This document shows, piece after piece, positions 1 through 61,070 of a stretch of 64,000 nucleotides of DNA (within the stretch, counting starts at the first letter, position 1; each line of letters starts with the position of its first letter). A model generated the notes under the pieces. The model was not told the origin of the DNA, made no database searches, and saw nothing but the letters and a program-made list of their open reading frames with translations. Made by a program: the position numbers and the translations under genes. The stretch lies in the IMG/VR virus record IMGVR_UViG_3300036853_000446, positions 248,001-312,000 of that record; one strand, 5' to 3'.

Positions 1-2
1 AT

Positions 3-290
3 GCGACCCTCGAGGCGCTCTGCAACGAAAAGCACGGCGAGCTGACCGACGACATCCTAAAGCCTCTCGAGCAGGCGATCAGGGCCATTCGGGAGGCCAC
101 CGCCGCCATCCTGCTTGCCACTCCCGACGAGTCACTCGCTGGGCTCATCTCGACGCTCGAAGCCCAGACGGTGCCCGGGGGAACCGTTCCCCCGTTCGCT
201 CCCGCCACGCTCGGCCCTAACCAGGTTTTCATCTCTCGCTACCCGACCCCCGAAGACCTCATCGAAAAGCCGGAGAAGCGTCGACCCTGA
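3..290 (+). CDS. hypothetical protein, 5'-truncated by window edge
   Basis: Open frame from position 3 to TGA at 288-290 with GC3-rich codons. Confidence 0.5.
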   Translation, partial: ATLEALCNEKHGELTDDILKPLEQAIRAIREATAAILLATPDESLAGLISTLEAQTVPGGTVPPFAPATLGPNQVFISRYPTPEDLIEKPEKRRP

Positions 291-333
291 ATCTCCTTGA
301 CCCCGATCCGACAAAGCTTCGCCTCGGCTCGGG

Positions 334-340
334 CGGTGTA
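334..340 (+). promoter_or_regulatory. class-2 motif CGGTGTA
   Basis: 10 nt before ATG 351. Confidence 0.55.
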
Positions 341-350
341 CCCGGTCGGG

Positions 351-665
351 ATGCGCAAACCACTCACCTACCGCGACCTCCTCCGGCTGCTACGCGCCCA
401 CGACTCTCGGTTCGACATCCGCCCCGGCAAGGGCAGCGAACGGGTTCTCTGCCTCCAGGGCCGCCCGGTCACCTGCTGCCTGCCGCACCACGGCGACGGG
501 CACACGATTGGCGTCGGCCTGCTGACTCGCATCGAACGCGCCTTCAAACTGCCCCGGGGCTTCTTCGACCGGCGGGACAAGCGGAAGGCCGCGGTCGAGA
601 TTCGGGGCGCAGACGTCGTAGGCGCCGGCCGTCCCTCCTCGGCCACCTGGGAATCCCCAGCCTAA
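351..665 (+). CDS. HicA-like toxin-fold protein (GSE instead of GSH)
   Basis: YRDLLRLLRAH...GKGSE...PHHGDGHTIGVGLLTRI follows the HicA pattern. Confidence 0.6.
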   Translation: MRKPLTYRDLLRLLRAHDSRFDIRPGKGSERVLCLQGRPVTCCLPHHGDGHTIGVGLLTRIERAFKLPRGFFDRRDKRKAAVEIRGADVVGAGRPSSATWESPA

Positions 666-762
666 TCCTAGTTTTCTCGCCGACTTCCTCGAACGGACCG
701 ACCGACCGTGACATCGTCGGTCTCTCGCCGATTTGTCGACGTGCCGCCCACTCCTTTCTCGC

Positions 763-790
763 GGTTCAAACCGCCGGGCTCGCCCGTACT
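763..790 (+). promoter_or_regulatory. class-1 ECF-like promoter (variant GGTTCAAA...CCCGTACT)
   Basis: 16-nt spacing, ATG at 800. Confidence 0.55.
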
Positions 791-799
791 TCCGGCAGA

Positions 800-907
800 A
801 TGTCACTCACCGAATCCAAGAAGGCTCTCGCCAGCTCCGACCCCGTCATTTTCGCGCGCAGGCCCGATTACTGGTTGAAGCCGGCGTTCCGCGGACTTCC
901 GATCTAG
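800..907 (+). CDS. 35-aa small protein
   Basis: MSLTESKKALASSDPVIFARRPDYWLKPAFRGLPI directly after a class-1 motif; below the ORF-track cutoff. Confidence 0.35.
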   Translation: MSLTESKKALASSDPVIFARRPDYWLKPAFRGLPI

Positions 908-1024
908 GTCACTTTGGTCCGGGCTGGAGACGGCCGTCATGAGAACCCCTTGCCGATCCTAGGGGTTGGGGGCGAGTTTGAATTTTTAGGGAACGAAATC
1001 GGCGGCTGGCGTCGTCATGGTCTT

Positions 1025-2254
1025 ATGATGACGACGAGCATGCAGCGGCACGAAACCAAGGCCGAACGACTGAGTCCTCTGGCGCCTGACCACGAGCGCA
1101 ACGCCGAAAATTATCCGAGCTGTTCGAACATCTCCGCTGGTCTCATCGGCTGGCAATTCACTCTCGTCCCAGAACGGCCGTCAGGTCCACCCGAGTACGT
1201 CCACGTCCCCGTCACCAGACCCTTCTCGTGGGGAGATGAGGAAGCGCTCAAAGTTCACCTCTTCGCGACTCGCTGGAATGCCGCCTGGGAAGCGGGACAC
1301 CTGCGATCGCAGATGTTCAATGAGAGCGATGTCCCTCGAACCCTGAAGTGGCTCGGAGATTATGACGATGTGGACTTACGCCTGATCGTCGCCGGCCGGG
1401 ACAATCCGTACCTTGCTTACGAGCCCCTGTACCATCTCCTGACTCTCGACACGTTGCACCACTGCGGACTGCCGCCTCTCAGGCGTGGCATATGGCCGTC
1501 GCTCGGCCCGATTGGAAATGCCCGTATGGGCGGCTACCTTCCGAGCGATTTCTCCCACCGACTGCAATCTGGCTTCTCCCGGCAGCTCTGGCCTCATCTC
1601 GAACGCCGACATCGAGGCTCGTATTCACCTCACGAGCCACTGGTCATGCTCTCGAACTGCCTGGATTTTTGGCTACCATACCTCGATCGAGTCGCGCAGA
1701 CCAGGCTCGGCGAATTCGAACGAGTTGCCCACGACGAAGAGTCGCTGGAGGCGCTCGAACATATCCCGGCAAACGTGAGAAAAAAGATCCGGCGTCCTCT
1801 AAAGGGCGGTGACATTTGGCACGGTGAGTTGGACGCGCAAGACGCCATGACTGAGATGGTGGAAGCCGCAGACGAGCGCGGCCGTCTGCGTGGAATTGTG
1901 GACGCCATACGGTCGAACAGGGTCGAGGACGACTTTTCAGCGCGATGGTCGAAAGCCAAGGCAGACTTCGAGCGTCGCCTCTATCACAAGCGCACTCACG
2001 TCAAGGTTTCGTTCGTAGAACTGGACGATACGATCCCCGTACACGCGCCCAACTCCGAGCCCGATGGGAATCTCATCTGGCAGGACCTACTGACGCTATG
2101 CGATCGACGGGAACGCCAAGTCGTCGTGTGTCTACGCAACGGCACCACTCGAGCGACCGATATCGCCCCGAAATTGGGCTACGCCAATCATAGTCCGGTC
2201 TCGAAGACCTTGGCTCGAATCCGAGCGAAGGTCGCCAAGCTATTCGACCTCTAG
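1025..2254 (+). CDS. protein with C-terminal sigma-70 region-4-like HTH
   Basis: C-term CDRRERQVVVCLRNGTTRATDIAPKLGYANHSPVSKTLARIRAKV; start uncertain. Confidence 0.6.
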   Translation: MMTTSMQRHETKAERLSPLAPDHERNAENYPSCSNISAGLIGWQFTLVPERPSGPPEYVHVPVTRPFSWGDEEALKVHLFATRWNAAWEAGHLRSQMFNESDVPRTLKWLGDYDDVDLRLIVAGRDNPYLAYEPLYHLLTLDTLHHCGLPPLRRGIWPSLGPIGNARMGGYLPSDFSHRLQSGFSRQLWPHLERRHRGSYSPHEPLVMLSNCLDFWLPYLDRVAQTRLGEFERVAHDEESLEALEHIPANVRKKIRRPLKGGDIWHGELDAQDAMTEMVEAADERGRLRGIVDAIRSNRVEDDFSARWSKAKADFERRLYHKRTHVKVSFVELDDTIPVHAPNSEPDGNLIWQDLLTLCDRRERQVVVCLRNGTTRATDIAPKLGYANHSPVSKTLARIRAKVAKLFDL

Positions 2255-2691
2255 CGTGAGACGACCGCGGACTTCGTGACGACCCCACGAATGCCGGCCC
2301 CCGTGATATCGATGTTGCCCGTCGCGCGGTTGTATTCGATGCGCTCGACGCCTCGGAACTTCGCTTCGACCGCCTCCCGCGTGAGCGTCTCGAGGGGCGG
2401 CGACTCGGCGCCGTTCATCCTAGTGAACGTCGCGTACCCCCGGCACCACTCGGACGGGTGCGCGTGGTGCATGCGACCGCTCGCGTACCTGACGCGGATC
2501 TCGCCCTTGCAGCCGGGGCAGGTGTCGACGAAGTCCCCCAGCGAATGGTCGCGACTGAGCCAGCGCCCCATCATGTCGAGGTAGCCGTCGGCGAGCTTGT
2601 CTCCCTTCGCAGCGCTCTGCCTTTGTGCGTTCAGATGCCTTTGTCGGCGTGCGTCGAGCTGTCGTCTGCGCTTCACGTCGTCTTTCGCCAT
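2251..2691 (-). CDS. hypothetical protein with CxxC
   Basis: ATG 2691, downstream of the array trailer; CPGC...H...C. Confidence 0.55.
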   Translation of the reverse strand: MAKDDVKRRRQLDARRQRHLNAQRQSAAKGDKLADGYLDMMGRWLSRDHSLGDFVDTCPGCKGEIRVRYASGRMHHAHPSEWCRGYATFTRMNGAESPPLETLTREAVEAKFRGVERIEYNRATGNIDITGAGIRGVVTKSAVVSR

Positions 2692-2723
2692 ATCGGTTTC
2701 GCCATCAGCGTGTCGTGAATCTT

Positions 2724-2980
2724 GTCGTGGTCTGGTGGGCTCCACGCAGCCTCTCAAATCTCTCTGCTCGCTGAGGAGGCAGCGCAACAGAACCAACGTC
2801 GTGGTCAGGTGGGCTCCACGCAGCCTCTCAAATGTCCGAGATCGCGACTTTAGGGTATGTAAATTCGTCGTGTCGTGGTCAGGTGGGCTCCACGCAGCCT
2901 CTCAAAGAAGGTGAACCCGTTGCTGTATGCCTTCGCGTCTACGAGTCGTGGTCAGGTGGGCTCCACGCAGCCTCTCAAAG
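2724..2980 (-). CRISPR. CRISPR array A1 (4 repeats, 3 spacers)
   Basis: 36-nt repeats GTCGTGGTCWGGTGGGCTCCACGCAGCCTCTCAAAK at 2724, 2798, 2872, 2945; spacers 37-38 nt; leader on the right. Confidence 0.95.
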
Positions 2981-3135
2981 ACGTAGCCTCAAAGTTCAGG
3001 CAATATAGGGCATTACGAGGCGGATTGCGAGAGGGTCGATCGTGCTCTGATTTGCCGTCGCGTAACCCTTCGATTTGCTTTGCATGGGCTGATCGAATCA
3101 CGTACTCGCTCGCCAAAGCCCCAAAGGGGCTCGGT
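2981..3135 (-). promoter_or_regulatory. conserved CRISPR leader copy 1
   Basis: Aligns with 12522-12665 and 18319-18472 (CAATATAGGGCATT, CGGATTGCGAG, GCGTAACCCTTCGATTTGCTTTGC, ATCGAATCAC, CGCTCGCC). Confidence 0.85.
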
Positions 3136-3184
3136 CGTCATTCGCAGGCGGACTCAGCGTGTGCTATGATTTATTAACTCAACC

Positions 3185-3745
3185 ATGGCCCAAACCGACA
3201 CCGTTGCCTCTCGGGTCGCCGCGCGTGTGCTCCACGCCATGGCCTATGATCGAAACGAATTCAGGAATAAGCTCGAAGAGCACATCGGTGGGGCTTACCT
3301 CGAGTTCTACAAGGCGCGGCTCGCAAGCAAGAACGGCCAAACCAAGTGGGTCAAGCACTGGCTCACGGAGGTGCGGCAGCTGCTCGATCGAAACCTCGTC
3401 GCCGCCATGCTGCACGAGATCCGCGGGTTCAAAGACCGGCGCAAGGTATATGAGCAGGTTTGTACCGCCATGAAGGCAAAGGACGCGGGCTACCGCCTGG
3501 CGGCTGAGAACACCGTGCTCCGTGACTACGGCCTTCGCAAGGTGCGCATGCTGCTAGACGATCAGGACACGACTAACTTTTGGGCCCTCGTCGAGCAGGC
3601 CGTCGACACCGGACTGGCAGGCAAGGCTGATGTCGAGCTGCAGGCACAACCCCAAGGCAAGCGCGATAAGGGCCGTGGCAAGCCGGAGAAGGGCGACAAC
3701 GGCCGTGGTAAGGGCGACAAGCGGAAGCGAGCGTCCGCTTCATGA
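3185..3745 (+). CDS. leader-adjacent hypothetical protein, paralog of 12708-13229
   Basis: Shared KLEEHIGGAYLEFYKARLA and EVRQLLDRNLV; basic C-terminal tail. Confidence 0.85.
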   Translation: MAQTDTVASRVAARVLHAMAYDRNEFRNKLEEHIGGAYLEFYKARLASKNGQTKWVKHWLTEVRQLLDRNLVAAMLHEIRGFKDRRKVYEQVCTAMKAKDAGYRLAAENTVLRDYGLRKVRMLLDDQDTTNFWALVEQAVDTGLAGKADVELQAQPQGKRDKGRGKPEKGDNGRGKGDKRKRASAS

Positions 3746-3816
3746 AGCTCAGTTGTCCTTCGACGGATCCTGGCGCGGCCGCGTCTTCTCCTTCGACGTT
3801 CGGCTCCTGTGAAGCC

Positions 3817-4299
3817 TCAGCTCGGGTTCGCGGCAAAGTCGAGAAACCCGGTAAACGGCAAGCGCGCATCCGCCGGCAGGCATTCGAACGTCCCGAGCGC
3901 TTCTCCCGCGTCGTTCCTCTTTAGGGTTGCCCTCCACGACACGTTGCCCAGCCCCCGATGCTCGCGCGTCAAGAAGGCAGCTTCTCCGTCTTCCGCGGCG
4001 AAATACACGGCGAGCGCGCGGTAGTCACGCGCCGTTTTTTTGAACAGGAATTGCAGATGGTTCGGCTCATCCCCGTCTCCGTCGACAATCAAGATCCCCC
4101 AAGGCGTCACGGGGAACGCAGGCCCACTCGGATTGTGTGTCGCGAGGCAAAAGAAGGTCGTCTTCACATCGCCATCCGACAGGAACGCCTCCCGAAGTCG
4201 AATCATCACCCACTCGTCCAGCTCCCGGATCACGGGTTCCGAGGACAGGTCGCGACCGTCAAAGGCCTCACGAAACGTAGACTTTGAAACCCCCGTCAT
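3817..4299 (-). CDS. hypothetical protein
   Basis: ORF track; start uncertain. Confidence 0.5.
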   Translation of the reverse strand: MTGVSKSTFREAFDGRDLSSEPVIRELDEWVMIRLREAFLSDGDVKTTFFCLATHNPSGPAFPVTPWGILIVDGDGDEPNHLQFLFKKTARDYRALAVYFAAEDGEAAFLTREHRGLGNVSWRATLKRNDAGEALGTFECLPADARLPFTGFLDFAANPS

Positions 4300-4438
4300 T
4301 GTGGTTACGGTTACCCCCAGGATCTGTCCGGAGTCAAGAGCAGTTCCTCTCAATGAGACCCAGCCTTCTTCAGGCCACTCAAAGGGGGACTTCCATCACC
4401 CAAGGCCAGCCAGATTCAAATTCCGAGTAGGGTCATTG

Positions 4439-4445
4439 CGGTGTA
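4439..4445 (+). promoter_or_regulatory. class-2 motif CGGTGTA
   Basis: 11 nt before ATG 4457. Confidence 0.55.
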
Positions 4446-4456
4446 GAATCGACCCA

Positions 4457-4735
4457 ATGAAAGCCAAACACCGACTCTTCCTGTCCGACAAAATTCTTCG
4501 AGTCATCGGTCCTCGAGAGGTTTCACCTCATGACGTGGCCGAGCTTTTGAGAAAGCGCGATCGGAGACACCCAACCGAACCTCCGTGGACGCCAGAGAGT
4601 AGAGCACTCGACACGTATCTTTCGCTGGTAATGGGGACATTACCCGAGCTTATGCGGGTCCGCCCAAACATGTTCAAGGCCCGGAACCCACATCATTTTC
4701 TCCGCATCGTGTCGAACGACTCAGGGAAGAGTTAG
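4457..4735 (+). CDS. small basic protein, possible winged HTH
   Basis: ILRVIGPREVSPHDVAELL; start set by class-2 motif. Confidence 0.5.
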   Translation: MKAKHRLFLSDKILRVIGPREVSPHDVAELLRKRDRRHPTEPPWTPESRALDTYLSLVMGTLPELMRVRPNMFKARNPHHFLRIVSNDSGKS

Positions 4736-4859
4736 GGTCGCGGACTTTGATAAGTTGCCTTTTTTGGGTAGGGTTCTGCGACCGACCGCACCCGTCTTGG
4801 CGTGGTCGGTTCCCTTCCCTTTGCTTTTCCCATCATTCGGTTCCATTATTTAGGTAACC

Positions 4860-5549
4860 GTGGTTACCCCAAAGGCCAATCTCGTGACCCAACGGATCGC
4901 CGCCCGCGTGGCGGCTCGAACCCTCTGGGCCATGACGAACGTCGCCCCTCGGCTCTCGGGCATCCCGAATGTCTCCATCTTCATGTCGGAGGGCACGAAC
5001 GAGGGAAAAGACCTTCAGCACGGTCCCCGCGTCAAGGTCGAAAGCCTCACCGGTCGGTTCCCCGACACCAGCGTCACTATTGGTCCAAATCCCCATGTAG
5101 TCGAGGGCGGCCCGCTTCCCGCCGACGTTTTGAAGCAAGTCATCATCTGGATCGACTTGAACCGCCCCATGCTCATGCGTCTTTGGACGTCCAAGATTGA
5201 CCAACAACAGGCGGCGTCTGCCGTCAAGAGCGTCGAGCACACCGAGCCAGTAACCTTCTTCCATCCTTCTCTCGAGGCTATCAAACGTGCCCTCTTGCCC
5301 GGCGAATTCATCACGGGCAAGCGTTCGCTTGCAAAGGCTCGCGGCCTCGACCTGGCGATCGAGGCCGGCAAAGACGAGTTCTTCGTTCACCAAGTCCTCG
5401 CCTCCGTCGGCGATCAGGTCACGCGCGGCGGGACGAGCGACGTGTGGAACGCGAGCGAACGATTGCCCGTCACGGAATCAAAGAAGTTTAAAGTCCCTGT
5501 AAAACGGCGCAAGCCGCCCGCTTCAAAGAAGCGACCATCGCGCAAATAA
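4860..5549 (+). CDS. DUF4160-like domain with C-terminal extension, paralog of 60633-61070
   Basis: GKDLQHGPRVKV...WIDLNRPMLMRLW. Confidence 0.65.
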   Translation: MVTPKANLVTQRIAARVAARTLWAMTNVAPRLSGIPNVSIFMSEGTNEGKDLQHGPRVKVESLTGRFPDTSVTIGPNPHVVEGGPLPADVLKQVIIWIDLNRPMLMRLWTSKIDQQQAASAVKSVEHTEPVTFFHPSLEAIKRALLPGEFITGKRSLAKARGLDLAIEAGKDEFFVHQVLASVGDQVTRGGTSDVWNASERLPVTESKKFKVPVKRRKPPASKKRPSRK

Positions 5550-5652
5550 ACGGCGGATTCGTCCGCGCGTGCCTCCGAGTCTGGCCCGTATTCCCTCGAA
5601 TTGCCCTACCCAAGGGCCCCGCGGCGCAAAAGGAGGTACCCTACGGGGTCAA

Positions 5653-6198
5653 ATGCCCATTCTCATTGGCCACCTGCAAATCGATCCCGACCGGATGCAC
5701 ACCATCGCGGATGCGCAGAGGGTCGTGGGCTCCACGCCCGCCAACATCACGATCGTGGGCGACGTCGAGCACTATCCCGAAACGGTCCTCGAGTACCTTC
5801 TCGTTCGGGCGCTCCGTCCCATGGTCGCCCTCGGGGCCAAGGTCGAGCGCGTGCATTACTGCCGGGAATATTTCCCTCTCCACCTTCTGACGGATCACGC
5901 ATTGGAGGTTGCCCGTACTCCCCCCGAAATGACCACCACCGAGACGACGACGCCCGAAAAGACCTACACCCTCACGCTGACCGAGAACGAGATGGCTCGC
6001 GTCATCCACTCCTTGAGCGTCGACGCCGAGTCCCTACGCGCGCTGGCGGAGCCGTTCGACAGCTACGCTCTCCAGCTGGCAGAGGCTTCCGAGGCACTCA
6101 GGGACCGCCTTCGCGAAATCGTAAAGCCCTACCGTGACCCCGTCGCTCACGTCCCCACGGACGAGCGCTGGGCCGCCGAACGCCTCCACAACCTGTGA
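5653..6198 (+). CDS. hypothetical protein (internal promoter and in-frame ATG at 5929)
   Basis: ORF track; class-1 motif inside the ORF. Confidence 0.55.
   Translation: MPILIGHLQIDPDRMHTIADAQRVVGSTPANITIVGDVEHYPETVLEYLLVRALRPMVALGAKVERVHYCREYFPLHLLTDHALEVARTPPEMTTTETTTPEKTYTLTLTENEMARVIHSLSVDAESLRALAEPFDSYALQLAEASEALRDRLREIVKPYRDPVAHVPTDERWAAERLHNL
5892..5920 (+). promoter_or_regulatory. class-1 ECF-like promoter
   Basis: GGATCAC-N-CCCGTACTC, ATG 5929. Confidence 0.7.
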
Positions 6199-6358
6199 GG
6201 AGCGGCGCGCGGGGGGAAGGCCGTTCACGGTCATCCCCCCGTTCGCGCTCGGCACTACACCTGTCTCTGACCCACTTTGACAAATCCAAAGCGATTTCTG
6301 TACCGTCTCGAGAGCCTTGGCGTGCCGCGTCGAGACCCAGGTGTTACTCTCACCTACC

Positions 6359-6814
6359 ATGGCTCTCAACACCGACGATCCAACAGAAACTAAACTCCGG
6401 AGCCTCGTGCTCGTCTCAAAAGATCGGGGCTCAGAAGACCTGGGCATGGGCTCTGTCGTAAACGCTGACCCGTCGCTCGTGCACCTCGGAGACGCGAGTG
6501 TACACCCCGCTGCGATTACCGAGGTCCGCATCGAGCGGTTCTGCGAGAAATACCAGGTGACGACATACGATTTGAGGACACTGGTGTCTGCTGGCTGGTG
6601 CACCTCGATTGGCACACGGTGGGGGGTTTTCCCTTCCGTTTGCATGAAATGCGGGCAGCCACCGCGCCAAGACGTCCACGAGATTCTCCGTCCCAAGACC
6701 CCCCACGGGGAGAAGGACCTCCGCGGCTGGACGCACCTGCACTGCGCGATCCATTGGTCCGAGAAGGCCAAGAGGCTGCATGATCAGGTCGAGCGCCTAA
6801 TCGCCGACGATTGA
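6359..6814 (+). CDS. hypothetical protein with CxxC...HxxC
   Basis: CMKC...HLHC. Confidence 0.55.
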   Translation: MALNTDDPTETKLRSLVLVSKDRGSEDLGMGSVVNADPSLVHLGDASVHPAAITEVRIERFCEKYQVTTYDLRTLVSAGWCTSIGTRWGVFPSVCMKCGQPPRQDVHEILRPKTPHGEKDLRGWTHLHCAIHWSEKAKRLHDQVERLIADD

Positions 6815-6822
6815 CGCGCCAC

Positions 6823-6852
6823 GGATCAAATGCCCGGGGCCCTCCCGTACTC
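6823..6852 (+). promoter_or_regulatory. class-1 ECF-like promoter
   Basis: GGATCAAA-N-CCCGTACTC, ATG 6858. Confidence 0.75.
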
Positions 6853-6857
6853 TCGCC

Positions 6858-7019
6858 ATGATCCATCTCTCAAACCTTCCGGCGGAAGAAATCACGATCG
6901 TGGCATACGTTGGCCTTCTGCTCATGGGCGAGTTCATCAAACCCAAGACCAGGCCCGTGCAGATCACATTCGCGCTTCTGGCACCACTCGCAATACTCGT
7001 CCTTTGGTTCGTCAAATGA
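6858..7019 (+). CDS. 53-aa membrane protein (2 hydrophobic segments)
   Basis: ITIVAYVGLLLMG and ITFALLAPLAILVLWFV; ATGA overlap with next gene; not in ORF track. Confidence 0.6.
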   Translation: MIHLSNLPAEEITIVAYVGLLLMGEFIKPKTRPVQITFALLAPLAILVLWFVK

Positions 7020-7312
7020 TCGCCTCCAAAGTCGCCGAGACCGAAACGTCCGACTTATCTGCCGTCGCGCATGAAGCCCTGTGCAGTCAACGCTGGGAAA
7101 TCGCCGCCGAGTTGCTCGACGCGCTCTTGGCTCGTGACGACGATTACGTAGGCGTGCCCTTCATGGGCCGGTACGCTGGCGCCCCCGATTTCATCGGGGC
7201 CCGCATCGTGGCCGTCAACGAGGCCGTCCGGCGCAACAACGACCGGGATCTCTTGCGAGTCGAGCTTGAAATCGAACAGCAAGAGGCCTCGAAGAGCGAG
7301 CGAAACGAATGA
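7016..7312 (+). CDS. hypothetical protein
   Basis: ATGA-coupled at both ends. Confidence 0.6.
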   Translation: MIASKVAETETSDLSAVAHEALCSQRWEIAAELLDALLARDDDYVGVPFMGRYAGAPDFIGARIVAVNEAVRRNNDRDLLRVELEIEQQEASKSERNE

Positions 7313-7596
7313 ACGTCGATAAGGTCATGTCTTACGCTCACGATCGCCACGGGCTTCTAGGCGATTTGGAAGGGCCCGGGTCGTTCGAGGCCGAGACGGC
7401 TCGTAGCGTCCGCTCGCTTCTCGAGCGTGGCTTCATCGAGCGGCGCGAGCGCACCGTCGTCATCGACCGCAGCTCGTACGGCGGCAACTGGACCGAGATG
7501 CAGCCGGTTGGCCCGACCACGATCGTCACGTGGCACCTGACGGACGCCGGTCGCGAACACTGGCTGAAGCTTCCGGTCAACGAACGCTCAGCGTAA
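7309..7596 (+). CDS. small winged-HTH-like protein
   Basis: RSVRSLLERGFIE...WHLTDAGR. Confidence 0.6.
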   Translation: MNVDKVMSYAHDRHGLLGDLEGPGSFEAETARSVRSLLERGFIERRERTVVIDRSSYGGNWTEMQPVGPTTIVTWHLTDAGREHWLKLPVNERSA

Positions 7597-7604
7597 ACGA
7601 GGCG

Positions 7605-7634
7605 GGATCAAACCTCCCCAGCCCGCCCGTATTC
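7605..7634 (+). promoter_or_regulatory. class-1 ECF-like promoter
   Basis: GGATCAAA-N-CCCGTATTC, ATG 7646. Confidence 0.75.
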
Positions 7635-7645
7635 CCCACGACACC

Positions 7646-7945
7646 ATGAAAAGCACTCTCGATTCGATTCAGGTTTTGGCCGCGCTCGACAACAGCACGC
7701 TCAGCGTCAAAGGCCTCGCGGAGAAGCTCACGGGCGACTCGACCAGCGAGACCGAGCGCGAGGTGGCCGATACCCTCTCGCTCCTCATCGACCAGGACAT
7801 GGTTCGAGCGTTTGAGGCCCACGGCGTGACCTGGTACGAGACGGCTGAGGCACCTCTCGTCCCGCGCCCCTCTCCCAAGCTCGACGCAGGCTACGCCGAC
7901 GAGGATCCGGGCGACGGTCGACCCGACCGCCTCTATGGCAACTGA
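7646..7945 (+). CDS. small winged-HTH-like protein
   Basis: LSVKGLAEKL...EVADTLSLLIDQDMV. Confidence 0.6.
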   Translation: MKSTLDSIQVLAALDNSTLSVKGLAEKLTGDSTSETEREVADTLSLLIDQDMVRAFEAHGVTWYETAEAPLVPRPSPKLDAGYADEDPGDGRPDRLYGN

Positions 7946-8214
7946 TTTTCGGAGCGGGTGCTTCAGCCCCGCTCAAGGGGAACCCCATGCTTTGGGTCGC
8001 GCAGCACGTGCAGCGCTGTGACCAGCCGATCGAGGACTTCGTCCCTATCGGTGGGCGGGAGCCGATCCATAATCCGGACCACGTGGTCAACCGCTTCGTT
8101 GACGGCACGATCGGCAGCCGTATCGGGCGGCAGGTCTTCATCATCATCCATCGCCCGTGATTGTATCCAAAAACTAGTGCCCTGAGCCATAGCCTTTGGC
8201 GTATATTGCCGGGC

Positions 8215-8634
8215 ATGGACTTGCTCGCAGTCGTAAAGAACGGCCGGATCGTCCTCGATGAAGCCACGGATCTCCCCGAAGGGACCGTAGTCGAACTCGG
8301 TGTCTATTACCCGGGGACGATCGCGTCCGACGCAGTCGGGTTCCTCCCTACGCCGCTGCAGCCGGCCGTGAGCACCATCTATAACCTTCGGCAAGCGCTC
8401 ACGGACGGCAAAACGGACATGGCGGCCTTCTACCGCGAACAGCTCGTCTCCGACCTGAACGGGGCTGAAGTCCTGCCCCTCTTGACCGTCGATGTTGCCC
8501 CGGCCCTTCGACAGCTGCTTCGTGCACCGGCGACCGATATTCGTCGACAGGATCTCGCGGCGCTCGAGCTGGCCTTGTTCGACGCCCGATTGCCCGATGC
8601 TGACGAGTCGTCCATCGACACTCCGATGTACTAG
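8215..8634 (+). CDS. antitoxin-like N-terminal domain protein
   Basis: AVVKNGRIVLDEATDLPEGTVVEL resembles DUF104/AF2212-type antitoxins. Confidence 0.5.
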   Translation: MDLLAVVKNGRIVLDEATDLPEGTVVELGVYYPGTIASDAVGFLPTPLQPAVSTIYNLRQALTDGKTDMAAFYREQLVSDLNGAEVLPLLTVDVAPALRQLLRAPATDIRRQDLAALELALFDARLPDADESSIDTPMY

Positions 8635-8682
8635 GCCCACCGCTTGACCCGACCGCAACCGAGTCGCTATGGGGACTGAGGC

Positions 8683-8892
8683 ATGATCAAAAAGCGCATC
8701 ATCAACGGCAAGCTCGTAGATCTCTCAGCACTCATCCCCGAGGGCTGGGTCAAGGCATTCCGGGAGGCCGAATGCAGCGTCTGCCACGAGACGGTCCAGG
8801 AGCATTTCGAGCGCTGCCTTTATTGCGGCTCGCCGATCGACGCTTTGATGTTTCCGCCCGAGGAGCCGTCCCCCGGTACGCCGACGAACTAG
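8683..8892 (+). CDS. small zinc-ribbon protein
   Basis: CSVC...CLYC; RBS GAGG. Confidence 0.6.
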   Translation: MIKKRIINGKLVDLSALIPEGWVKAFREAECSVCHETVQEHFERCLYCGSPIDALMFPPEEPSPGTPTN

Positions 8893-8910
8893 ACCTGCTC
8901 GGAGGGGCCT

Positions 8911-9573
8911 TCAGGTCCCGTCTCGTCCGTCGTCGTCTTTCGCGAGCGTTTCGCCGTGTTTCAAGTAGCCATGCTGCCGCAGGTAAGCCTCGAATCTCGC
9001 CTCTCGCTCTTCGGGAGTCAGAGACGCGGCGTTCTTACCGGCAGCGGTCGCTTCCTCGAGCATCTCGAAGAGCTGCCGATGGGGCGTCTCGACGATCTGG
9101 GAATCGTTCATGTAGAACGGCAGATCGAGGTCGGCGTTCGCGATGCGTCGCCCTAGCTCGAAGCTGACGAAGGCATCGAGAGCCTCGGAGAGGCCGGGGG
9201 GCAGCGGTCGAACGCGAGAGAGCTGTGAACTCATGAAGCCAAGCGCCCCCGGTGGGAGCCTGCCCGCCGCGTCGAGCACCCGACGGTCTTCCAAGGTTGC
9301 GATCTGTTCGGTGAGCTTTTCGCAAAAGTTGAGCTTGTGCTCGAGAACCCGCTTCTCGCTTTGGGACTCTTCAATGATAGCTCGCAGCCGAGTCCTCTCG
9401 TTCTCGAGCGCGTTCTTTTCGTCGAACACCGTTTTGAGTTTGCGTTCGATTTCCTGCACCGACCGCTCGATGCCCGCGACTTTCCGGGCAAATGACTGAC
9501 GTATCTCGGCTGGCTCGGGGGCCTCTTCACCGCATCGCTGGCATTTCATGATTTGGCCTTTCGCTTTGGTCAT
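8911..9573 (-). CDS. coiled-coil hypothetical protein
   Basis: CQRC followed by heptad-rich segment. Confidence 0.6.
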   Translation of the reverse strand: MTKAKGQIMKCQRCGEEAPEPAEIRQSFARKVAGIERSVQEIERKLKTVFDEKNALENERTRLRAIIEESQSEKRVLEHKLNFCEKLTEQIATLEDRRVLDAAGRLPPGALGFMSSQLSRVRPLPPGLSEALDAFVSFELGRRIANADLDLPFYMNDSQIVETPHRQLFEMLEEATAAGKNAASLTPEEREARFEAYLRQHGYLKHGETLAKDDDGRDGT

Positions 9574-10015
9574 TGGCTTCGCGTCGGCTTTGTCACGCGC
9601 CCCTCAGGGCCTCGAGGGCGAGCCGCGCCCGGTCAGCGATGATGCCCGCCGGTTGGTCCGCCTTCACCGTTACGAGCCACGTAATGGCTTTCTCGACCCG
9701 TTGTCGGCAGCCTTTTAGACTTGCCTCCAGCTCCAGGCACCGGGCCTCGAGATCGACCGCGTTCTCACCGTTTGCAATCATGTCGAAGCCGAGCAGTCTG
9801 CGCCCTTGGTACGAGCGCGTCAAACTCGCCCTTCAGGTTCGGCCTTTCGACCGCACCACCATCATTCAACGGGCTCGAGGCCGGCGGTTGGTAACGCAAA
9901 TCAGCAACGCTCATTGGCGGTTGTCACTCGACCCATCGATAGCGGCATCCATTTCTTGCCGTCATTAGTTTAAGCTCATCGCCGCGCGCCGGAACAACCG
10001 CCGTCCCACGACCGC

Positions 10016-10462: not shown

Positions 10463-10535
10463 CCGGCCGATCCTGGCGCGATTCGATTCCCGATTCGTGT
10501 CCCATCGATCGGCGGCTCCGCTCTATAATCCCGCC

Positions 10536-10907: not shown

Positions 10908-10920
10908 GGACCCGGTCGCG

Positions 10921-11409: not shown

Positions 11410-11424
11410 TGCCCTCAGGCCCGA

Positions 11425-11730: not shown

Positions 11731-11773
11731 CCCGAGGGCCATTCGGGTGGGCTCCGATCGCTGGAATCGTCAG

Positions 11774-12521
11774 GTCGTGGTCTGGCCTCTTAACTCGAAA
11801 GACGAGCCGTCGTTGATGGGGACATGCGCTGAGTCGTGGTTGGGTGGGCTCCACGCAGCCTCTCAAATGGTATCGAGGAGGACGTCCTTCTCGCTGAACC
11901 GTCGTGGTCTGGTGGGCTCCACGTAGCCTCTCAAATCCACCAGGACGGACAAGCGTCCCGAGTAGTCGGCGTGTCGTGGTTGGGTGGGCTCCACGCAGCC
12001 TCTGAAATCGTCGGGCGAATCGTGTCTCATGCCGACAAGGTACTCGTCGTGGTCGGGTGGGCCCCACGCAGCCTCTCAAATCCGTTGAGAGAAGTAGTGA
12101 CCACTCGGTGTGGGATCTCGTCGTGGTCTGGTGGGCTCCACGCAGCCTCTCAAATTTTTCCTAAGGAGCGAGCCGGCGAACTATCCTCCCCGTCGTGGTC
12201 GGGTGGGCCCCACGCAGCCTCTCAAATCAAGATACCGCTGGTGCGAGACATTGGTGATACGTGGTCGTGGTTAGGTGGGCTCCACGCAGCTTCTCAAAAT
12301 CCATGACGGCGTCAGCGGTTGGTGAGGGTCATCCTCAAGTCGTGGTTGGGTGGGCTCCACGCAGCCTCTCAAATCAGCCGCTCAAATTACGCACCTCGCC
12401 ACGCTGGTTCCGTCGTGGTCAGGTGGGCTCCACGCAGCCTCTCAAATTCTTGTAATCGCCTGCGAGCCGTCCAGCCGCGGGTTGCGTCGTGGTCTGGTGG
12501 GCTCCACGCAGCCGCTCAAAT
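11774..12521 (-). CRISPR. CRISPR array A2 (10 repeats plus 1 internally deleted trailer repeat)
   Basis: Repeats at 11833, 11901, 11973, 12046, 12120, 12192, 12264, 12339, 12412, 12486; degenerate copy 11774-11794. Confidence 0.97.
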
Positions 12522-12665
12522 TTCGTAGCCTTAAAGTTCAGTCAATATAGGGCATTGCAACGCGGATTGCGAGGGGGTCGTTTATGAGCTGGTTTGCTCG
12601 CGCGTAACCCTTCGATTTGCTTTGCGTCGGTTGATCGAATCACCTTCCCGCTCGCCAAAGCCCCA
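12522..12665 (-). promoter_or_regulatory. conserved CRISPR leader copy 2
   Basis: Aligns with the other two leaders. Confidence 0.85.
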
Positions 12666-12707
12666 GAGTCGTCAGTCGCAGGTGTGCTACCCTTCGTTAA
12701 GGCCCCA

Positions 12708-13229
12708 ATGACCCAACCCGATACCGTTGTCGCTCGAGTGGCTGCGCGCGTGCTCCGCGCGATGGCTTATGACCGCAACGGCTTCAAGGACAAGCTCGAA
12801 GAACATATCGGCGGGGCCTATCTCGAGTTCTATAAGGCGCGGCTCGCGACCAAAAACAAGCAAACCGAGTGGGTTCAGCATTGGAACACGGAAGTGCGTC
12901 AGCTGCTCGACCGCAATTTGGTCGGTGCCATGCTGCACTCCATTCGTGGCTTTACGGACCGCCGAAAAGCATACGAGCAAGTTCGGACTATGCTTCGAGC
13001 AAGAGACGCCGGCTACCGGAGGGCGGCCGAAACCATCGTGCTCAAAGACTATGGCCTCCGGAAAGTCCGCATTCCTTTGGACGATCAGGATATGGAGGAT
13101 TTCTGGATCCTCGTTGACGAGGCCGCCGAGAACGGTCTAACGGCGGATCCTGATGCTGAAGTCAAGCCGCAAGGCAAGCGGCAAAAGGGAAAGCCCAACA
13201 AGCGGAAGCGAGCATTAGCCACGCCGTGA
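12708..13229 (+). CDS. leader-adjacent hypothetical protein, paralog of 3185-3745
   Basis: High visible identity to 3185-3745. Confidence 0.85.
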   Translation: MTQPDTVVARVAARVLRAMAYDRNGFKDKLEEHIGGAYLEFYKARLATKNKQTEWVQHWNTEVRQLLDRNLVGAMLHSIRGFTDRRKAYEQVRTMLRARDAGYRRAAETIVLKDYGLRKVRIPLDDQDMEDFWILVDEAAENGLTADPDAEVKPQGKRQKGKPNKRKRALATP

Positions 13230-15663: not shown

Positions 15664-15671
15664 AGGGCGCA

Positions 15672-17550: not shown

Positions 17551-18318
17551 ATCGTGGTCTGGTAAGGCTCCATACAGCCTCGCGAATAAGTTCACAGCTT
17601 GAAAGGTCAAGGACAGATCGGGTTGTCGTGGTTGGGTGGGCTCCACGCAGCCTCTCAAATCGGTCGCCTTTGACACGGGCATACTCATATCATGCTGCCA
17701 GTCGTGGTTGGGTGGGCTCCACGCAGCCTCTCAAATCCGAGCACCACCGCGTCGCGACGCGGAAGGTAGTGGGGTCGTGGTTGGGTGGGCTCCACGCAGC
17801 CTCTCAAATCGCAAGCCAAGGATGCACGTGCTACGGACGACCGCGTGTCGTGGTTGGGTGGGCTCCACGCAGCCTCTCAAATCAAGCTGGCGGAAGCTGC
17901 CGTTGACCACTCTTCTATCGTCGTGGTCGGGTGGGCTCCACGCAGCCTCTCAAATCTGAACCTCGAGTGGATGCTTAATGGACCGCTCATCGTCGTGGTC
18001 GGGTGGGCTCCACGCAGCCTCTCAAATCCAATGCGCGACGAGGCTCGTCACCTGCGTCGGATTGTCGTGGTTGGGTGGGCTCCACGCAGCCTCTCAAATT
18101 CGCCTCGAAGCAGTCGGCACTCGTATCGGATGCGCACGTCGTGGTCGGGTGGGCTCCACGCAGCCTCTCAAATTCTGCGCCTGCAGGTGCGGGCTACCGA
18201 TCACAGTGGCGTCGTGGTCGGGTGGGCTCCACGCAGCCTCTCAAATCCGTCAAGTCCTCGGCCCCGAGACGGAGGTTGTGCTGTCGTGGTCGGGTGGGCT
18301 CCACGCAGCCTCTCAAAT
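17551..18318 (-). CRISPR. CRISPR array A3 (10 repeats plus 1 degenerate trailer repeat)
   Basis: Repeats at 17625, 17701, 17774, 17847, 17920, 17992, 18064, 18138, 18211, 18283; degenerate copy 17551-17587. Confidence 0.97.
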
Positions 18319-18472
18319 CTGTAGCCATAAAGTCCAGGCAATATAGGGCATTGCAAGGCGGATTGCGAGAGGGTCATTTACGAGCTGGTTTGTTCGCGCG
18401 TAACCCTTCGATTTGCTTTGCGTGAACTATCGAATCACCTTCGCGCTCGCCGAAGCCCAGAGGGGCTTCGGC
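18319..18472 (-). promoter_or_regulatory. conserved CRISPR leader copy 3 with distal hairpin
   Basis: Aligns with other leaders; perfect GCCGAAGCCC-AGAG-GGGCTTCGGC at 18449-18472. Confidence 0.85.
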
Positions 18473-18826
18473 CGTCCTGAGGTCCGATCACGACAACCCT
18501 ACCGTCTGTTTCGTCACGCCAACCAAGCCGAGAAGTCCGGCGAGACGGATCGCCTTGTAACAGCGTTCCTCGACCAATCCCGTCTCGCGGCCGAGCCTCG
18601 CGGCAAAAACATCGATGTCCACGATCCCGAGCCGGTTCGAGAGCTGAGCGACCAACAGAACCAATGAGACCGCGCTCCCGGGCATCTCGGTTCCGTGCAT
18701 CGTAAGCTCCGGAAACCATGGCACCGTGTGGAGAGGGCTCTCGGACATGGCCCAATCTTATCGTCTTTTTCCACGCGAGGGCGCATCAAAAGCGCGGTAA
18801 CCTCCACGCCCATGGGAGAAATAAAG

Positions 18827-41922: not shown

Positions 41923-42159
41923 GATGTCAGGTCTCCCTGTGAGGACGCTGCGACCGGAGCCGCAACGTCGAGTAGAACCTAAAGATAGCATGGCTCTCTA
42001 GTGGGCGCCAGCGGGGCGGGCGGCCGGGGACTTACGCAATCGAGTCCAGGGTTCAAAAGGCTTCCCGGAGCTGCCTCGCGACCAAAGGCGAATCACGGTC
42101 ATTGTTTCCCTTCCCTTTGGATCCCGTCGGAGGCAAACTCGCACCCCATTGAGGGGTCA

Positions 42160-43602
42160 ATGGCAAAGAGGAAGTCAAAGACGACGAGTGTCCAGCCCGG
42201 TGAAGTGCTGAAGGGGTTTCGCGTCAAACTCAGACCGACCCAGGAGGATCTGCGTTACCTATCGACGGCTCAAGTCGAGCTGATGACGATGTGGAACATC
42301 CTCGTGATAACGTGGAAGACGCACGTCGATTACTGCGTTCGGCATTGCGAGGACCTCGGGCTCATCGGACCCGTACCGCCACGACCGACCTCGGACCAAG
42401 ACACGAACGTGCCCGAAGAGATCGCCGAATGGGAGGAGTACGCGGCACTCTGCCGTGAACGCCGCCGAAGCGCTCGCGAGCAGTGTAAGACCGTCGAGGG
42501 TCTGACACGGCGCGACTGGGCGAATCGAGCCCTCGATTACCACCAACTTGATCTCACGGAGAAGGCTCGAGAGCAGACGCAGATCGATTACCGCGTCCTG
42601 CGGTCCGCCGTGAAGGGCGTCACGACGGCCCATATGGCCCAGGCCGTCATCGAGACTTACAAGGCGTCATTGCAGAAAGGGCGGCCGCCACCGAAGCTCA
42701 AGAGACGCCCGCTCGAGATGCCTCTCTTGCTTCGCAGCGGTAAGGATTTGCTTACGCTTTCAGCGAACCACTCCACCCGAACGACGGCGTCCGGGAAGAA
42801 GCGGCTCACCGGCTCCCACCACTGCATCGTCAAGTTTGGCCCGCTCAAGATCGGGGGACGATTCAACCGCCCGCCGTCGGGTCCCTTCCTCCAGGGCATT
42901 TCGATCGGGCTCGAGAAGGACGGCTGGTACGCCTCCGCGAAGGTCCGGACCCTACCTGAGGATCTGCCGAAGCCAACGAAGGAAATCATCGCGATCAACC
43001 CGGGACTCGAATGCCTCTACGCCGACAATGAGGGTTATGTGATCGAGAACCCACGGGGCAACGCTTACTCCCTCCGGATGCGCGAGATGAGCGATTGGAT
43101 CGACGACGCCGAAACCCAGTGGGACGAAGCCCACCGTCGCAACCATCAAGCTCGATATGCCGAGCGTTTCGCGCGGCACACGGAGGACCTCATCTACAGC
43201 CGCATCCTCCCGAAGCTCGCCGATTACGAGACGATTCTCATCGGCAAGGCCGGCAAAACCGCCGCTCAAGGTCGACAAAACCGCATCAGTAAGAACGACG
43301 AGGGCGGCTACGTTTCGGCCATGAGCTTGATGCAGCAGCTCATCATCCAGAGGTATGGCCTCTATGACCCCGACGAGAATCCGACGGGGCGAGTGCGAGT
43401 GCTGGAGTCCATGGGAATTTCCCGGAGGTGCTCGCGTTGCGGAACCGAGCACGCAACCCGTTATCAACGCAACAATTTACGCCGGTATGACCAACAGACC
43501 GATTGCCAGGAACCCTCGTGTCGGCTCAAGATACACGTCGATGTTGGCGCCGCTCGCAACCTGCTTTCCAACTATCGGGATTTGCAGGCGGCAGCAGAAT
43601 GA
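42160..43602 (+). CDS. compact type V (TnpB/Cas12-like) effector with inactivated RuvC, 480 aa
   Basis: TnpB-like GFRVKLRPT, PKLKRR, GWYAS; RuvC-I IIAINPG (D->N), RuvC-II TILIGK (E->G), Zn finger CSRC...CQEPSC, RuvC-III HVDVGAARNL; RBS GAGGGG; array 2 nt downstream. Confidence 0.88.
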   Translation: MAKRKSKTTSVQPGEVLKGFRVKLRPTQEDLRYLSTAQVELMTMWNILVITWKTHVDYCVRHCEDLGLIGPVPPRPTSDQDTNVPEEIAEWEEYAALCRERRRSAREQCKTVEGLTRRDWANRALDYHQLDLTEKAREQTQIDYRVLRSAVKGVTTAHMAQAVIETYKASLQKGRPPPKLKRRPLEMPLLLRSGKDLLTLSANHSTRTTASGKKRLTGSHHCIVKFGPLKIGGRFNRPPSGPFLQGISIGLEKDGWYASAKVRTLPEDLPKPTKEIIAINPGLECLYADNEGYVIENPRGNAYSLRMREMSDWIDDAETQWDEAHRRNHQARYAERFARHTEDLIYSRILPKLADYETILIGKAGKTAAQGRQNRISKNDEGGYVSAMSLMQQLIIQRYGLYDPDENPTGRVRVLESMGISRRCSRCGTEHATRYQRNNLRRYDQQTDCQEPSCRLKIHVDVGAARNLLSNYRDLQAAAE

Positions 43603-43604
43603 CC

Positions 43605-44869
43605 CTCAGAACGGCAGCGTGGTGCCTACCCTCCCACGACGAGGAGTTCGGTGGCCGCGCGCGATGATGTGCAAGACCTCAGAACGGCAGCGTGGTGCCT
43701 ACCCTCCCACGACACGAGGTCGGAAAGAGTCTCAATCTCGGCAATCTCACGCTCAGAACGGCAGCGTGGTGCCTACCCTCCCACGACGACCTGCGGAAGA
43801 AGGGCCTTCGCCGATCTACTTGGGCTCAGAACGGCAGCGTGGTGCCTACCCTCCCACGACGAAGTGACGTCTACCAATTGGGCTTGGTCCTCTATCACTC
43901 AGAACGGCAGCGTGGTGCCTACCCTCCCACGACTTATGGGGATGAACCGAGAACCAGCCTCGATCGATGTCTCAGAACGGCAGCGTGGTGCCTACCCTTC
44001 CACGATAGCCGCGTCCTCCAAACTGCCGAATCGATTCCGAAACTCAGAACGGCAGCGTGGTGCCTACCCTCCCACGACGGCATCTCCACTCGTTCCCTCG
44101 TCCTCCGGGTATGGACCTCAGAACGGCAGCGTGGTGCCTACCCTCCCACGACTACGGCTGGCGGTCCCCCGCCAAACGAGGTTGGCGTGCTCAGAACGGC
44201 AGCGTGGTGCCTACCCTCCCACGACGAAACATCACGCGCCTGGGCAACAGCATCAGCGTCGCCATCTCAGAACGGCAGCGTGGTGCCTACCCTCCCACGA
44301 CCAACGACATGACCCCGTGGAACCTGTGAGCTTGCTCGGCGCTCCTCGGAACGGCAGCGTGGTGCCTACCCTCCCACGACGGAAAGACTCGTTCGTGATC
44401 CCGAGTCGACCCCCATGCTCAGAACGGCAGCGTGGTGCCTACCCTTCCACGACGAGGAGTTCGGTGGCCGCGATGGTGATGCGCAAGCCCTCAGCATGGC
44501 AGCGTGGTGCCTACCCCTCCACGACTTCGAGCAACACGTCAACGCGCGTATTGGCTCGTTCAGCCTCAGAGTGGCAGCGCGGTGCCTACCCTTCCGCGAC
44601 ACGTCCCCCAGTTAGCGGAAAGCCTCGGTACTGGTCTCAGAATGGCAGCGTGGTGCCTACCCTTCCACGACCACATCCGTGGATAGAGAGTCCCCCTCCG
44701 GAGTCAACCTCAGAACGGCAGCGTGGTGCCTACCCTTCCACGACTTTCCGATCTCGTTAAAGTAGATGCGGACTTATGGCAGCGTGGTGCCTACCCTTCC
44801 ACGACGTGCACGGGTCTTCTCAAAGAAAGACGCCTCAGAACGGCAGCGTGGTGCCTACCATTCCACGAC
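43605..44869 (+). CRISPR. CRISPR array B (18 repeats, 17 spacers)
   Basis: 36-nt CTCAGAACGGCAGCGTGGTGCCTACCCTYCCACGAC at 43605, 43678, 43752, 43825, 43898, 43971, 44043, 44117, 44190, 44266, 44345, 44418, 44490, 44565, 44636, 44709, ~44770 (5'-degenerate), 44834; decay increases away from the gene. Confidence 0.98.
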
Positions 44870-45157
44870 CCAATGCTCATAGATGGCAGACGCCACAGGC
44901 TTACAGAACTGGCTAGGCTTCCCCGATCTCAACGCGCTGGACATAGCTCGCGTCGTCGCTCATCCAGACAGCGATTGCCTCTCCGTTGTCGAGACGCTGG
45001 TAGACGTGGAGTTCGAGGCGAAAATCGAATTCCAGGACGCCGCCCTCGACGTCTTCCTCCGCATAGTCCCACCATTCGGCCATGCTCTTTTGTCGGGCGG
45101 AGCCGACGGCAGTTGCGTGGCCGACGGCCGGCTTTGCGGAGTTTTTGTCGATCGGGA

Positions 45158-60632: not shown

Positions 60633-61070
60633 ATGGCCGAGACCACTGAACGGCCATCTTCTCCGGCGGCTCATGCTAGACTCGAGACGATGTCGACCGC
60701 CGAGCGCGTTGTCTCTCAATTTATCGAGGTTGATTTCGAAGTCGCTGCCATGAGCAACGTTCTCCCCGAGGACAGCGGCGTCGAGGATGCCGTCCTCTGG
60801 ATCAGCCCGGGTGAGTCCGATGGTAAAGACCTGGCGCACGGCCCCCGCCTCAAGGTCGTGCTGGGCACCAAGATAACGGCAGAGAGCCTCCGCGATTCCG
60901 TGAGCGTGACGATTGAGGCAACCCCACGGGTCATCGGGTCGCGGACGCTCCCGGGCAAGGTCAAGCGTCAGGTGGAAGCCTTCATTCACCTGAATCAGGA
61001 CGTCTTGCTCCGCCACTGGCGCGGTGAGCTTGGGTCGAAGCAGACGCTCAACCTGCTTCAGCCCATCTGA
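60633..61070 (+). CDS. DUF4160-like protein, paralog of 4860-5549
   Basis: GKDLAHGPRLKV...FIHLNQDVLLRHW. Confidence 0.7.
   Translation: MAETTERPSSPAAHARLETMSTAERVVSQFIEVDFEVAAMSNVLPEDSGVEDAVLWISPGESDGKDLAHGPRLKVVLGTKITAESLRDSVSVTIEATPRVIGSRTLPGKVKRQVEAFIHLNQDVLLRHWRGELGSKQTLNLLQPI

Follow-up and report, generated by a model that had tools for sequence, protein, structure and literature searches.

A gene repeated beside two CRISPR-like arrays of a large soil phage is probably a duplicated accessory cassette rather than a CRISPR component

When an uncharacterized gene is found twice beside clustered regularly interspaced short palindromic repeats (CRISPR), does it belong to the CRISPR system, or is its position incidental? 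This question is raised by a 64,000-nucleotide stretch of DNA (the window) that comprises bases 248001–312000 of IMGVR_UViG_3300036853_000446, a linear IMG/VR virus record of 407,634 bp whose completeness was estimated by CheckV at 86%. The sequence has a GC content of about 60% and was found in DNA runs of soil metagenomes only, and every CRISPR-like array of the whole record is inside the window. The gene, designated here T1 (3185..3745, plus strand, 186 amino acids), has a paralog, T2 (12708..13229, plus strand, 173 amino acids). A preliminary description of the locus regarded the pair as a possible new CRISPR-associated accessory protein or, alternatively, as a passenger of a duplication, and named homologs without linkage to arrays as the outcome that would speak against the first possibility. 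Our analysis favours, with somewhat better than even confidence, a mobile accessory cassette, possibly antitoxin-like, that was carried in a segmental duplication and is not a CRISPR component. Within this explanation, it is very likely that the adjacency to CRISPR arrays is incidental, and the antitoxin-like role, which is predicted from domain associations, is tentative and stands a little short of even.

T1 and T2 are close paralogs, as had been described. They are 66% identical over their full length (BLASTP E 2e-87) and 71% identical over residues 1–164 by tblastn, and they are the only two copies in the record; no third copy was found in its 407,634 bp. The GC content of T1 by codon position (0.67/0.41/0.76) is typical of coding sequence. 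Each gene is located just past the leader of an array that carries the same repeat type, A. Array A1 (2724..2980; four repeats of 36 nt with three unique spacers) ends 204 bp before the start of T1, and array A2 (11833..12521; 10 repeats, many of them point-mutated, with nine unique spacers) ends 186 bp before the start of T2. A third array, A3 (17551..18318), consists of 10 near-identical repeats (17625–18318) and a degenerate terminal repeat at its left end (approximately 17551–17586). All were identified by repeat detection, and spacers are all unique and differ between arrays. The approximately 155 nt that follow the last repeat are conserved in alignments of A1, A2 and A3, with 80–86% pairwise identity, and form the putative leaders at 2981..3139 (A1), 12522..12673 (A2, end coordinate approximate) and 18319..18476 (A3), all assigned to the minus strand. 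The leader is present at A3 and the T gene is absent from it, in agreement with the preliminary description: by blastn, the similarity of A3 to the A1 module ends at 18476, which matches position 3139 and is 46 bp short of the T1 start codon.

At T1, a consensus scan identified one promoter-like and one terminator-like site. The sigma-70-like promoter match (TTCGCA-18-TATGAT with a TG extension; 3141..3170, plus strand) begins where the similarity to the A3 leader stops, 2 nt after position 3139, and its spacing is not kept at A2, where there is an 11-nt deletion. No promoter-like or terminator-like match was found at T2. An N-terminal motif, RVAAR.L.AM, was considered as a targeting signal and dropped, as it is present in only three open reading frames (ORFs) of the genome (T1, T2 and D1, a gene described below).

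The genes had been described as divergent from the arrays. Comparison of flanks, terminal repeats and repeat types suggests minus-strand transcription of A1–A3 from a leader in the right flank: the conserved flank is on that side, A3 ends on the left in its degenerate repeat, and the reverse complement of the A repeat is approximately 70% identical to the plus-strand repeat of another array, B, from which it also differs by a compensatory hairpin change (see below); array B runs in the direction of the Cas12-like gene that it follows. The divergent arrangement is deduced from these comparisons. Within the A1 leader, the segment 3022–3038, GGATTGCGAGAGGGTCG, resembles the reverse complement of the 3' end of the repeat; it may be either an anti-repeat or an inverted repeat that has degenerated.

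Are the two adjacencies independent of each other? A blastn search of the A1 module against the whole record returned one unbroken alignment, from 2724–3672 to 12264–13189, with 72% nucleotide identity. The duplicated block spans the array, the leader and then the gene up to the end of its helical core; past this point there are low-complexity tails and unrelated DNA. A3 shares only positions 2722–3139 of the module. Since the similarity runs from array to leader to gene without a break, the array end, the leader and the gene were copied as one block in one event, and the two gene-array adjacencies consequently do not constitute independent evidence of association. The earlier statement that the gene travels with the array twice is correct in that both adjacencies are real, but they go back to one duplication, not two. 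It is the alternative offered there, a passenger of a duplication, that this unbroken similarity supports, with the refinement that the copy is old and that both genes have been selected. The proportion of synonymous differences between T1 and T2 (pS) is 0.62, the synonymous divergence (dS) is 1.32, near saturation, and the nonsynonymous divergence (dN) is 0.19. The duplication is thus old, and the dN/dS ratio of 0.14 indicates that both copies encode a protein under purifying selection, which argues that the gene is useful in its own right.

The leader behaves differently from the gene with which it was duplicated. Its identity among the three arrays is far above the conservation of the saturated synonymous sites of the gene, and it is therefore constrained in its own right, or else its copies are being homogenised; this is observed in a genome in which Cas1 was not found. 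The repeats of A2 carry many individual point mutations and those of A3 are essentially perfect; A2 looks as if it is decaying and A3 as if it was recently expanded or homogenised. Because A3 has a leader, essentially perfect repeats and no T gene, any role of leader and array is fulfilled there without T in cis. Two additional A-type mini-arrays of three repeats each (45976–46160 and 63637–63786) were identified by repeat detection; their repeats are on the minus strand, in the opposite orientation to A1–A3, which as written read on the plus strand, and neither has the conserved leader or a T gene. Long ORFs that run through arrays (for example 11836–12306, 17785–18324 and 43651–44760; up to 369 amino acids) are repeat artefacts and not genes.

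With one duplication event behind both adjacencies, the evidence for or against a CRISPR function has to come from other genomes. A word-based search for proteins similar to T1 and T2 identified 33 relatives, and an exhaustive profile search extended these to 282 representative clusters at 50% identity (E ≤ 1e-3). Neighbourhoods were sampled at 30 homolog loci, equivalent to approximately 20 independent contexts and 170 kb in total, from metagenome contigs, four metagenome-assembled genomes (MAGs; Myxococcales, 'Deltaproteobacteria' and one unclassified among them) and four IMG/VR contigs. Arrays were sought with a periodic-repeat detector that, when validated on the window, recovers every array, those of three repeats included. 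It found no CRISPR array in any of the sampled loci, nor was there a Cas12-like gene, any leader-like or repeat-like DNA, or a neighbour gene family that recurs between independent loci. The sampled homologs thus lack linkage to arrays, the very outcome named beforehand, and the proposed CRISPR-associated accessory protein is not borne out: an array was present in none of the approximately 20 contexts and a Cas12-like gene in none.

The nearest relatives are especially informative. Four proteins (P0003–P0006) have 68–79% identity and are as close to T1 as its paralog T2 is, the closest at 77–79%, and the similarity of their DNA to T1 and T2 is limited to the coding sequence and includes neither leader nor array. 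The A-repeat core and the leader motif had no match in other viral contigs, and in metagenome contigs the 18-nt core of the A repeat gave single, non-array matches only. Inside the window, the T gene is absent from the locus of the Cas12-like gene with array B and from both A-type mini-arrays.

What surrounds the homologs is mobile or accessory DNA of a typical kind. The readable contexts include tyrosine integrases, a DDE transposase directly upstream, PIN and DUF3987 proteins and a DpnII-like nuclease. The distribution is sporadic: among 401 genomes sampled from the phylum to which one host MAG belongs, the family was detected in a single one, the seed itself. In a Logan contig of 2395 bp (L035), the T homolog P0006 is flanked by homologs (58–66% identity) of two genes of our record. 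These two genes sit approximately 3 kb apart at 175343–179268 of the record, with no T gene there. L035 gives the impression of a related element in which the cassette was inserted elsewhere. We infer that the cassette is autonomous.

Which kind of protein does the cassette encode? The T family consists of unannotated helical-bundle proteins with a core of approximately 145 amino acids, and most members are single-domain proteins of 130–165 residues. Its conserved motifs are EFYKAxLA, WxxHWxxE and GFxDR, together with R23, D114, D128 and W133; the invariant polar residues are R23, E40, Y42, K43, H58, E62, D84, R85, D114 and D128. An AlphaFold2 model of T1 built with 27 homologs is all-helical, with six helices in residues 2–153, a mean predicted local distance difference test score (pLDDT) of 87.7 and a predicted template modelling score (pTM) of 0.74. 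The C-terminal tail that follows the bundle is of low confidence in the model, disordered and rich in lysine, arginine and glycine. Lysine and arginine account for 12 of 36 tail residues in T1 and 9 of 23 in T2, so that both the helical nature and the basic tails reported for the two proteins are confirmed by the model and by tail composition. Such a tail is limited to a small subclade (P0001–P0006, P0026, P0030, P0037 and P0048) and is not a trait of the family.

No known family accounts for these proteins. Scans of T1, T2 and their relatives with Pfam, NCBIfam, PHROGs and PADLOC returned no significant family, and no helix-turn-helix (HTH) or other DNA-binding family was detected in them. 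Syd, SspH, DUF6026, Imm63 and KNTase_C were rejected as candidates, their matches being weak, scattered and inconsistent. A profile search of the Protein Data Bank (PDB) with T gave nothing below E 0.9, and Foldseek found no PDB match of the T model at E ≤ 0.001. A wide VIA search reached Z 8.0 at best, against helices of membrane proteins and designed bundles, a background level for helical models, and the scores of an ESM-Atlas feature search (0.76 or lower) were uninformative. The structure search that had been suggested for this gene therefore yields generic helical-bundle likeness only.

A faint resemblance to DUF29 had also been reported. The best ESM-Atlas shape match was a mostly viral cluster in which 17% of the members carry DUF29, with template-modelling (TM) scores of 0.51/0.59 over 123 residues, a level that is background for helical bundles. 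VIA matched T to PDB 3fcn, which we take to be a PF01724 protein, with Z 7.4 and a root-mean-square deviation of 6.8, again in the background range for helical models. The PF01724 hidden Markov model (HMM) had no match at E ≤ 1 in the whole record, T1 and T2 included, and PF01724 is absent from the families listed for 69 scanned T members at E ≤ 1. An hhalign comparison between a T profile of 69 sequences and a DUF29 profile of 28 bona fide proteins gave a probability of 0.3% (E 0.22). What is left of the resemblance is at most a shared bundle shape; the sequence and profile tests fail.

The only recurrent association of the T family is with a DUF4160-like domain, referred to here as D. It is approximately 120 amino acids long and has the motifs HGPRxKV and LNRxxLxxHW. 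In the window it forms the first approximately 125 residues of D1 (4860..5549, plus strand, 229 amino acids), which starts 1.1 kb past the end of T1; near T2 there is no D gene. D1 is supported by its GC content by codon position, by HMM matches, by a sub-threshold match to the Pfam profile PF13711 (E 0.011) and by 36% identity to the C-terminal half of the homolog P0017 (E 6e-19). P0017 is a fusion with D located C-terminal to T, and the distant P0075 is a fusion in the reverse order, with D located N-terminal to T. In the MAG locus L013, a D gene (5052–5891, minus strand) overlaps the start of the T gene by 8 nt, in a translationally coupled arrangement. Four of the six known D-like genes are either fused to T or less than 1.2 kb from a T gene, though T is very rare; the remaining ones, a second D-like gene of the window (D2; 60693..61070, plus strand; PF13711 E 8e-4, 20 bits against a cut-off of 23) and the D gene of locus L036, have no T neighbour.

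A second domain takes part in these rearrangements. The C-terminal domain of the L013 D protein, approximately 140 amino acids long with the motif VLVTR and no Pfam match, is fused directly to T in P0111 (residues 150–289). In another homolog, P0126, the T domain is preceded by a weak Phd/YefM-like N-terminus. No conserved third partner was found near P0111, P0075 or P0017, where the small flanking ORFs resemble neither one another nor the window. Shuffling of this sort is typical of domains that belong to a single conflict system, and the arrangements of D, T and the VLVTR domain suggest a small domain-shuffling network with a role as toxin or in defence. In the experimentally supported DhiT/DhiA toxin-antitoxin pair of Dickeya dadantii (PMC8198452), the toxin is DUF4160, which has also been proposed as an effector domain in the NsnC proteins of Menshen (PMC12065111). 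Pfam scans of the T proteins gave no match to DUF2442.

These observations can be joined into one account. The T family is scattered over mobile DNA (phages and integrative elements) and a few MAGs, in neighbourhoods that differ from locus to locus, and it behaves as a self-contained cassette. One such cassette may have come to sit beside the leader of an orphan type-V-like array, and a segmental duplication then copied the array end, the leader and the gene together, thereby mimicking a gene that follows the array. Both copies have been retained by purifying selection for a function of their own. The arrays do not need the T gene, because A3 and the two mini-arrays lack it. As for the function, T may be a non-catalytic binding partner of toxin-type D domains, i.e. 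an antitoxin-like, immunity-like or autoinhibitory module, because the DUF4160-like domain is its only recurrent association and DUF4160 is the toxin of DhiT/DhiA. The binding or neutralising role is suggested because T matches no catalytic family and because it is T that phages have in orphan form; T1 and T2, as such copies, could neutralise cognate toxins of the phage or of its host.

Several observations weigh against this account. Many of the homolog contigs are short (several extend only 0.3–2 kb on one side), and arrays beyond 1–6 kb are possible. The assignment of D to DUF4160 is below threshold in five of the six D-like sequences, with PF13711 E values of 8e-4 to 0.1 and 13–20 bits against a cut-off of 23, and the matches cover only profile positions of approximately 26–64. 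Approximately 95% of the T representatives are single-domain proteins, and most of the sampled loci have no D-like gene within 6 kb. T1 and D1 do not form an operon, because a probable convergent minus-strand gene (3817–4353) intervenes. The many invariant polar residues of T are more than is usual for antitoxins, and T could be an enzyme or a ligand binder. Finally, the linkage between gene and leader has been kept in both copies despite saturated synonymous sites, which is compatible with a local functional tie and is not evidence of one.

The alternative that survives best, although we consider it unlikely, is a stand-alone nucleic-acid-binding or regulatory protein of mobile elements, such as a transcription regulator or a nucleoid-type protein, with no tie to either CRISPR or DUF4160. 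The mostly solitary, single-domain occurrence of T, the basic tail and the promoter-like and terminator-like sites of T1 would agree with such a protein. The tail, however, occurs in few members only, no HTH or other DNA-binding family was detected, and the independent fusions with D and with the C-terminal domain of the L013 type favour a protein-protein module.

We regard as quite improbable a lineage-specific CRISPR accessory protein or regulator, in which T1 and T2, transcribed divergently from the leader, would bind the leader or pre-crRNA (precursor CRISPR RNA), possibly through the basic tail, and so adjust how the orphan A arrays are expressed or processed for a Cas12-like system that has no Cas1. 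Each gene is indeed separated from its array by 186–204 bp that include a leader of 80–86% identity, this linkage has been kept in both copies though dS is saturated, and the basic disordered tail is a feature of just this subclade. On the other hand, the two adjacencies are one duplication event, the gene is missing from A3, whose repeats are the most uniform, and from both mini-arrays, there is no array or Cas12-like gene near homologs in approximately 20 contexts, including relatives of 77–79% identity, and the Cas12-like locus with array B has no T gene.

There is an equally small chance that T is itself an active enzyme or toxin with an active site in the helical bundle, and that the D-like domain is its regulator or co-effector. 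Approximately 20 invariant or near-invariant residues, charged and aromatic ones included, in EFYKA..LA, W..HW..E and GF.DR, and the weak Phd/YefM-like antitoxin N-terminus of P0126 would fit an active T. They are opposed by the lack of any catalytic family match by sequence or fold, by the experimental support for DUF4160 as the toxin of DhiTA (PMC8198452), and by the two orphan phage copies without an obvious partner, which fit a neutraliser more easily than a toxin.

That T1 and T2 were co-opted from a toxin-partner family and now act close to the leader, as regulators or chaperones of the orphan arrays that serve a hypercompact Cas12-like effector without Cas1, we hold to be improbable to a slightly greater degree. 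If it were true, leader and gene would form a functional unit that has stayed together since the old duplication, and T would represent a new kind of CRISPR ancillary protein limited to this lineage. That T is a divergent member of DUF29 (PF01724) is scarcely credible, since in its favour are only the ESM-Atlas cluster (TM 0.51/0.59) and the 3fcn match (Z 7.4), Z scores of 7–8 are background for helical models, and the PF01724 HMM, the 69-member scan and hhalign were all negative.

The presumed user of the arrays is a Cas12f/Cas12u/TnpB-like protein of 533 amino acids (42001..43602, plus strand), which is weakly supported by PF07282 (E 2.6e-4), by the Cas12u and Cas12f models of PADLOC and by a PHROG transposase. 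It is present in a single copy and is the only Cas-like gene that we found in the record; Cas1 was not found in its 407 kb. Array B (43604..44871, plus strand; 18 repeats of approximately 36 nt, CTCAGAACGGCAGCGTGGTGCCTACCCTCCCACGAC) starts 2 nt after this gene. The reverse complement of the A repeat shares with the B repeat the 3' end CCACGAC, and the hairpin shows a compensatory change between the repeat types (GGCT GCGTGG AGCC in A and GGCA GCGTGG TGCC in B). A and B are presumably two related repeat types with one shared effector, and the region 42001–44871 has the look of a hypercompact type-V-like system carried by a soil phage of very large size.

The window as a whole looks like an accessory, plastic region of the phage. 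Other accessory-type genes in it encode a sub-threshold HicA-like toxin (297–665), a Uma2-family endonuclease (10016–10462), a protein with a ClpX-type C4 zinc finger (13646–14176), whose gene comes directly after the T2 module, a protein with a ParB N-terminal domain (34097–35092) and a large serine recombinase (58843–60420). An Rfam scan of positions 1–20000 of the window found no family match.

As a CRISPR finding, the T genes carry little weight, given that the gene-follows-array pattern is a pseudo-replicate from one segmental duplication, and they show why guilt-by-association calls within one genome need care. More promising in this window is the compact type-V-like system with its constrained leader; a locus with a 533-residue Cas12f/TnpB-like protein, no Cas1, five or six arrays and two repeat types deserves an assessment of its own. 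The by-product of the analysis is an unannotated helical family of approximately 280 clusters at 50% identity that is tied by fusion to a DUF4160-like domain and to a second uncharacterized domain. If confirmed, it would be a new class of partner or neutraliser for a poorly understood toxin family, and its phage-borne orphan members would be candidate 'antitoxin' decoys.

How does the T family compare with known systems? DUF29 proteins are likewise all-helical and of approximately 145 amino acids, with a rough shape match (TM 0.5–0.6), but there is no sequence or profile similarity, and the DUF29 motifs (HLLKWxYQP, PSL) differ from EFYKAxLA, WxxHWxxE and GFxDR of T. CRISPR ancillary genes of the Csx and Can type and leader-proximal regulators are found beside array leaders, as T is in this one genome; unlike them, T has no conserved association with arrays or cas genes across genomes and is absent from the effector locus. 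CapRel SJ46 is a fused toxin-antitoxin defence protein with an autoinhibitory antitoxin-like domain. The fusions of T to toxin-type domains in P0017, P0075 and P0111 resemble it by analogy only, with no homology to CapRel.

A further comparison is with DhiT/DhiA (DUF4160/DUF2442; PMC8198452). Both involve a DUF4160-like protein and a small second protein in mobile or defence islands, and the 8-nt gene overlap in L013 is as in toxin-antitoxin operons. However, T is a helical bundle of approximately 145 amino acids and not a DUF2442 protein, D is below the Pfam threshold, most T genes are solitary, and the domains are often fused, in both orders; the roles of toxin and neutraliser are only predicted here.

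In its genomic behaviour, the family can be compared with phage 'morons' and other accessory cassettes of mobile elements. Like these, T is a small single gene of sporadic occurrence in unrelated neighbourhoods (phages, integrase-bearing islands and sites adjacent to insertion sequences), its homology with its relatives stops at the gene borders with no shared neighbours, and T1 has promoter-like and terminator-like sites of its own, as far as consensus matches tell. What sets the T cassette apart from the usual moron is that it was duplicated together with a CRISPR leader.

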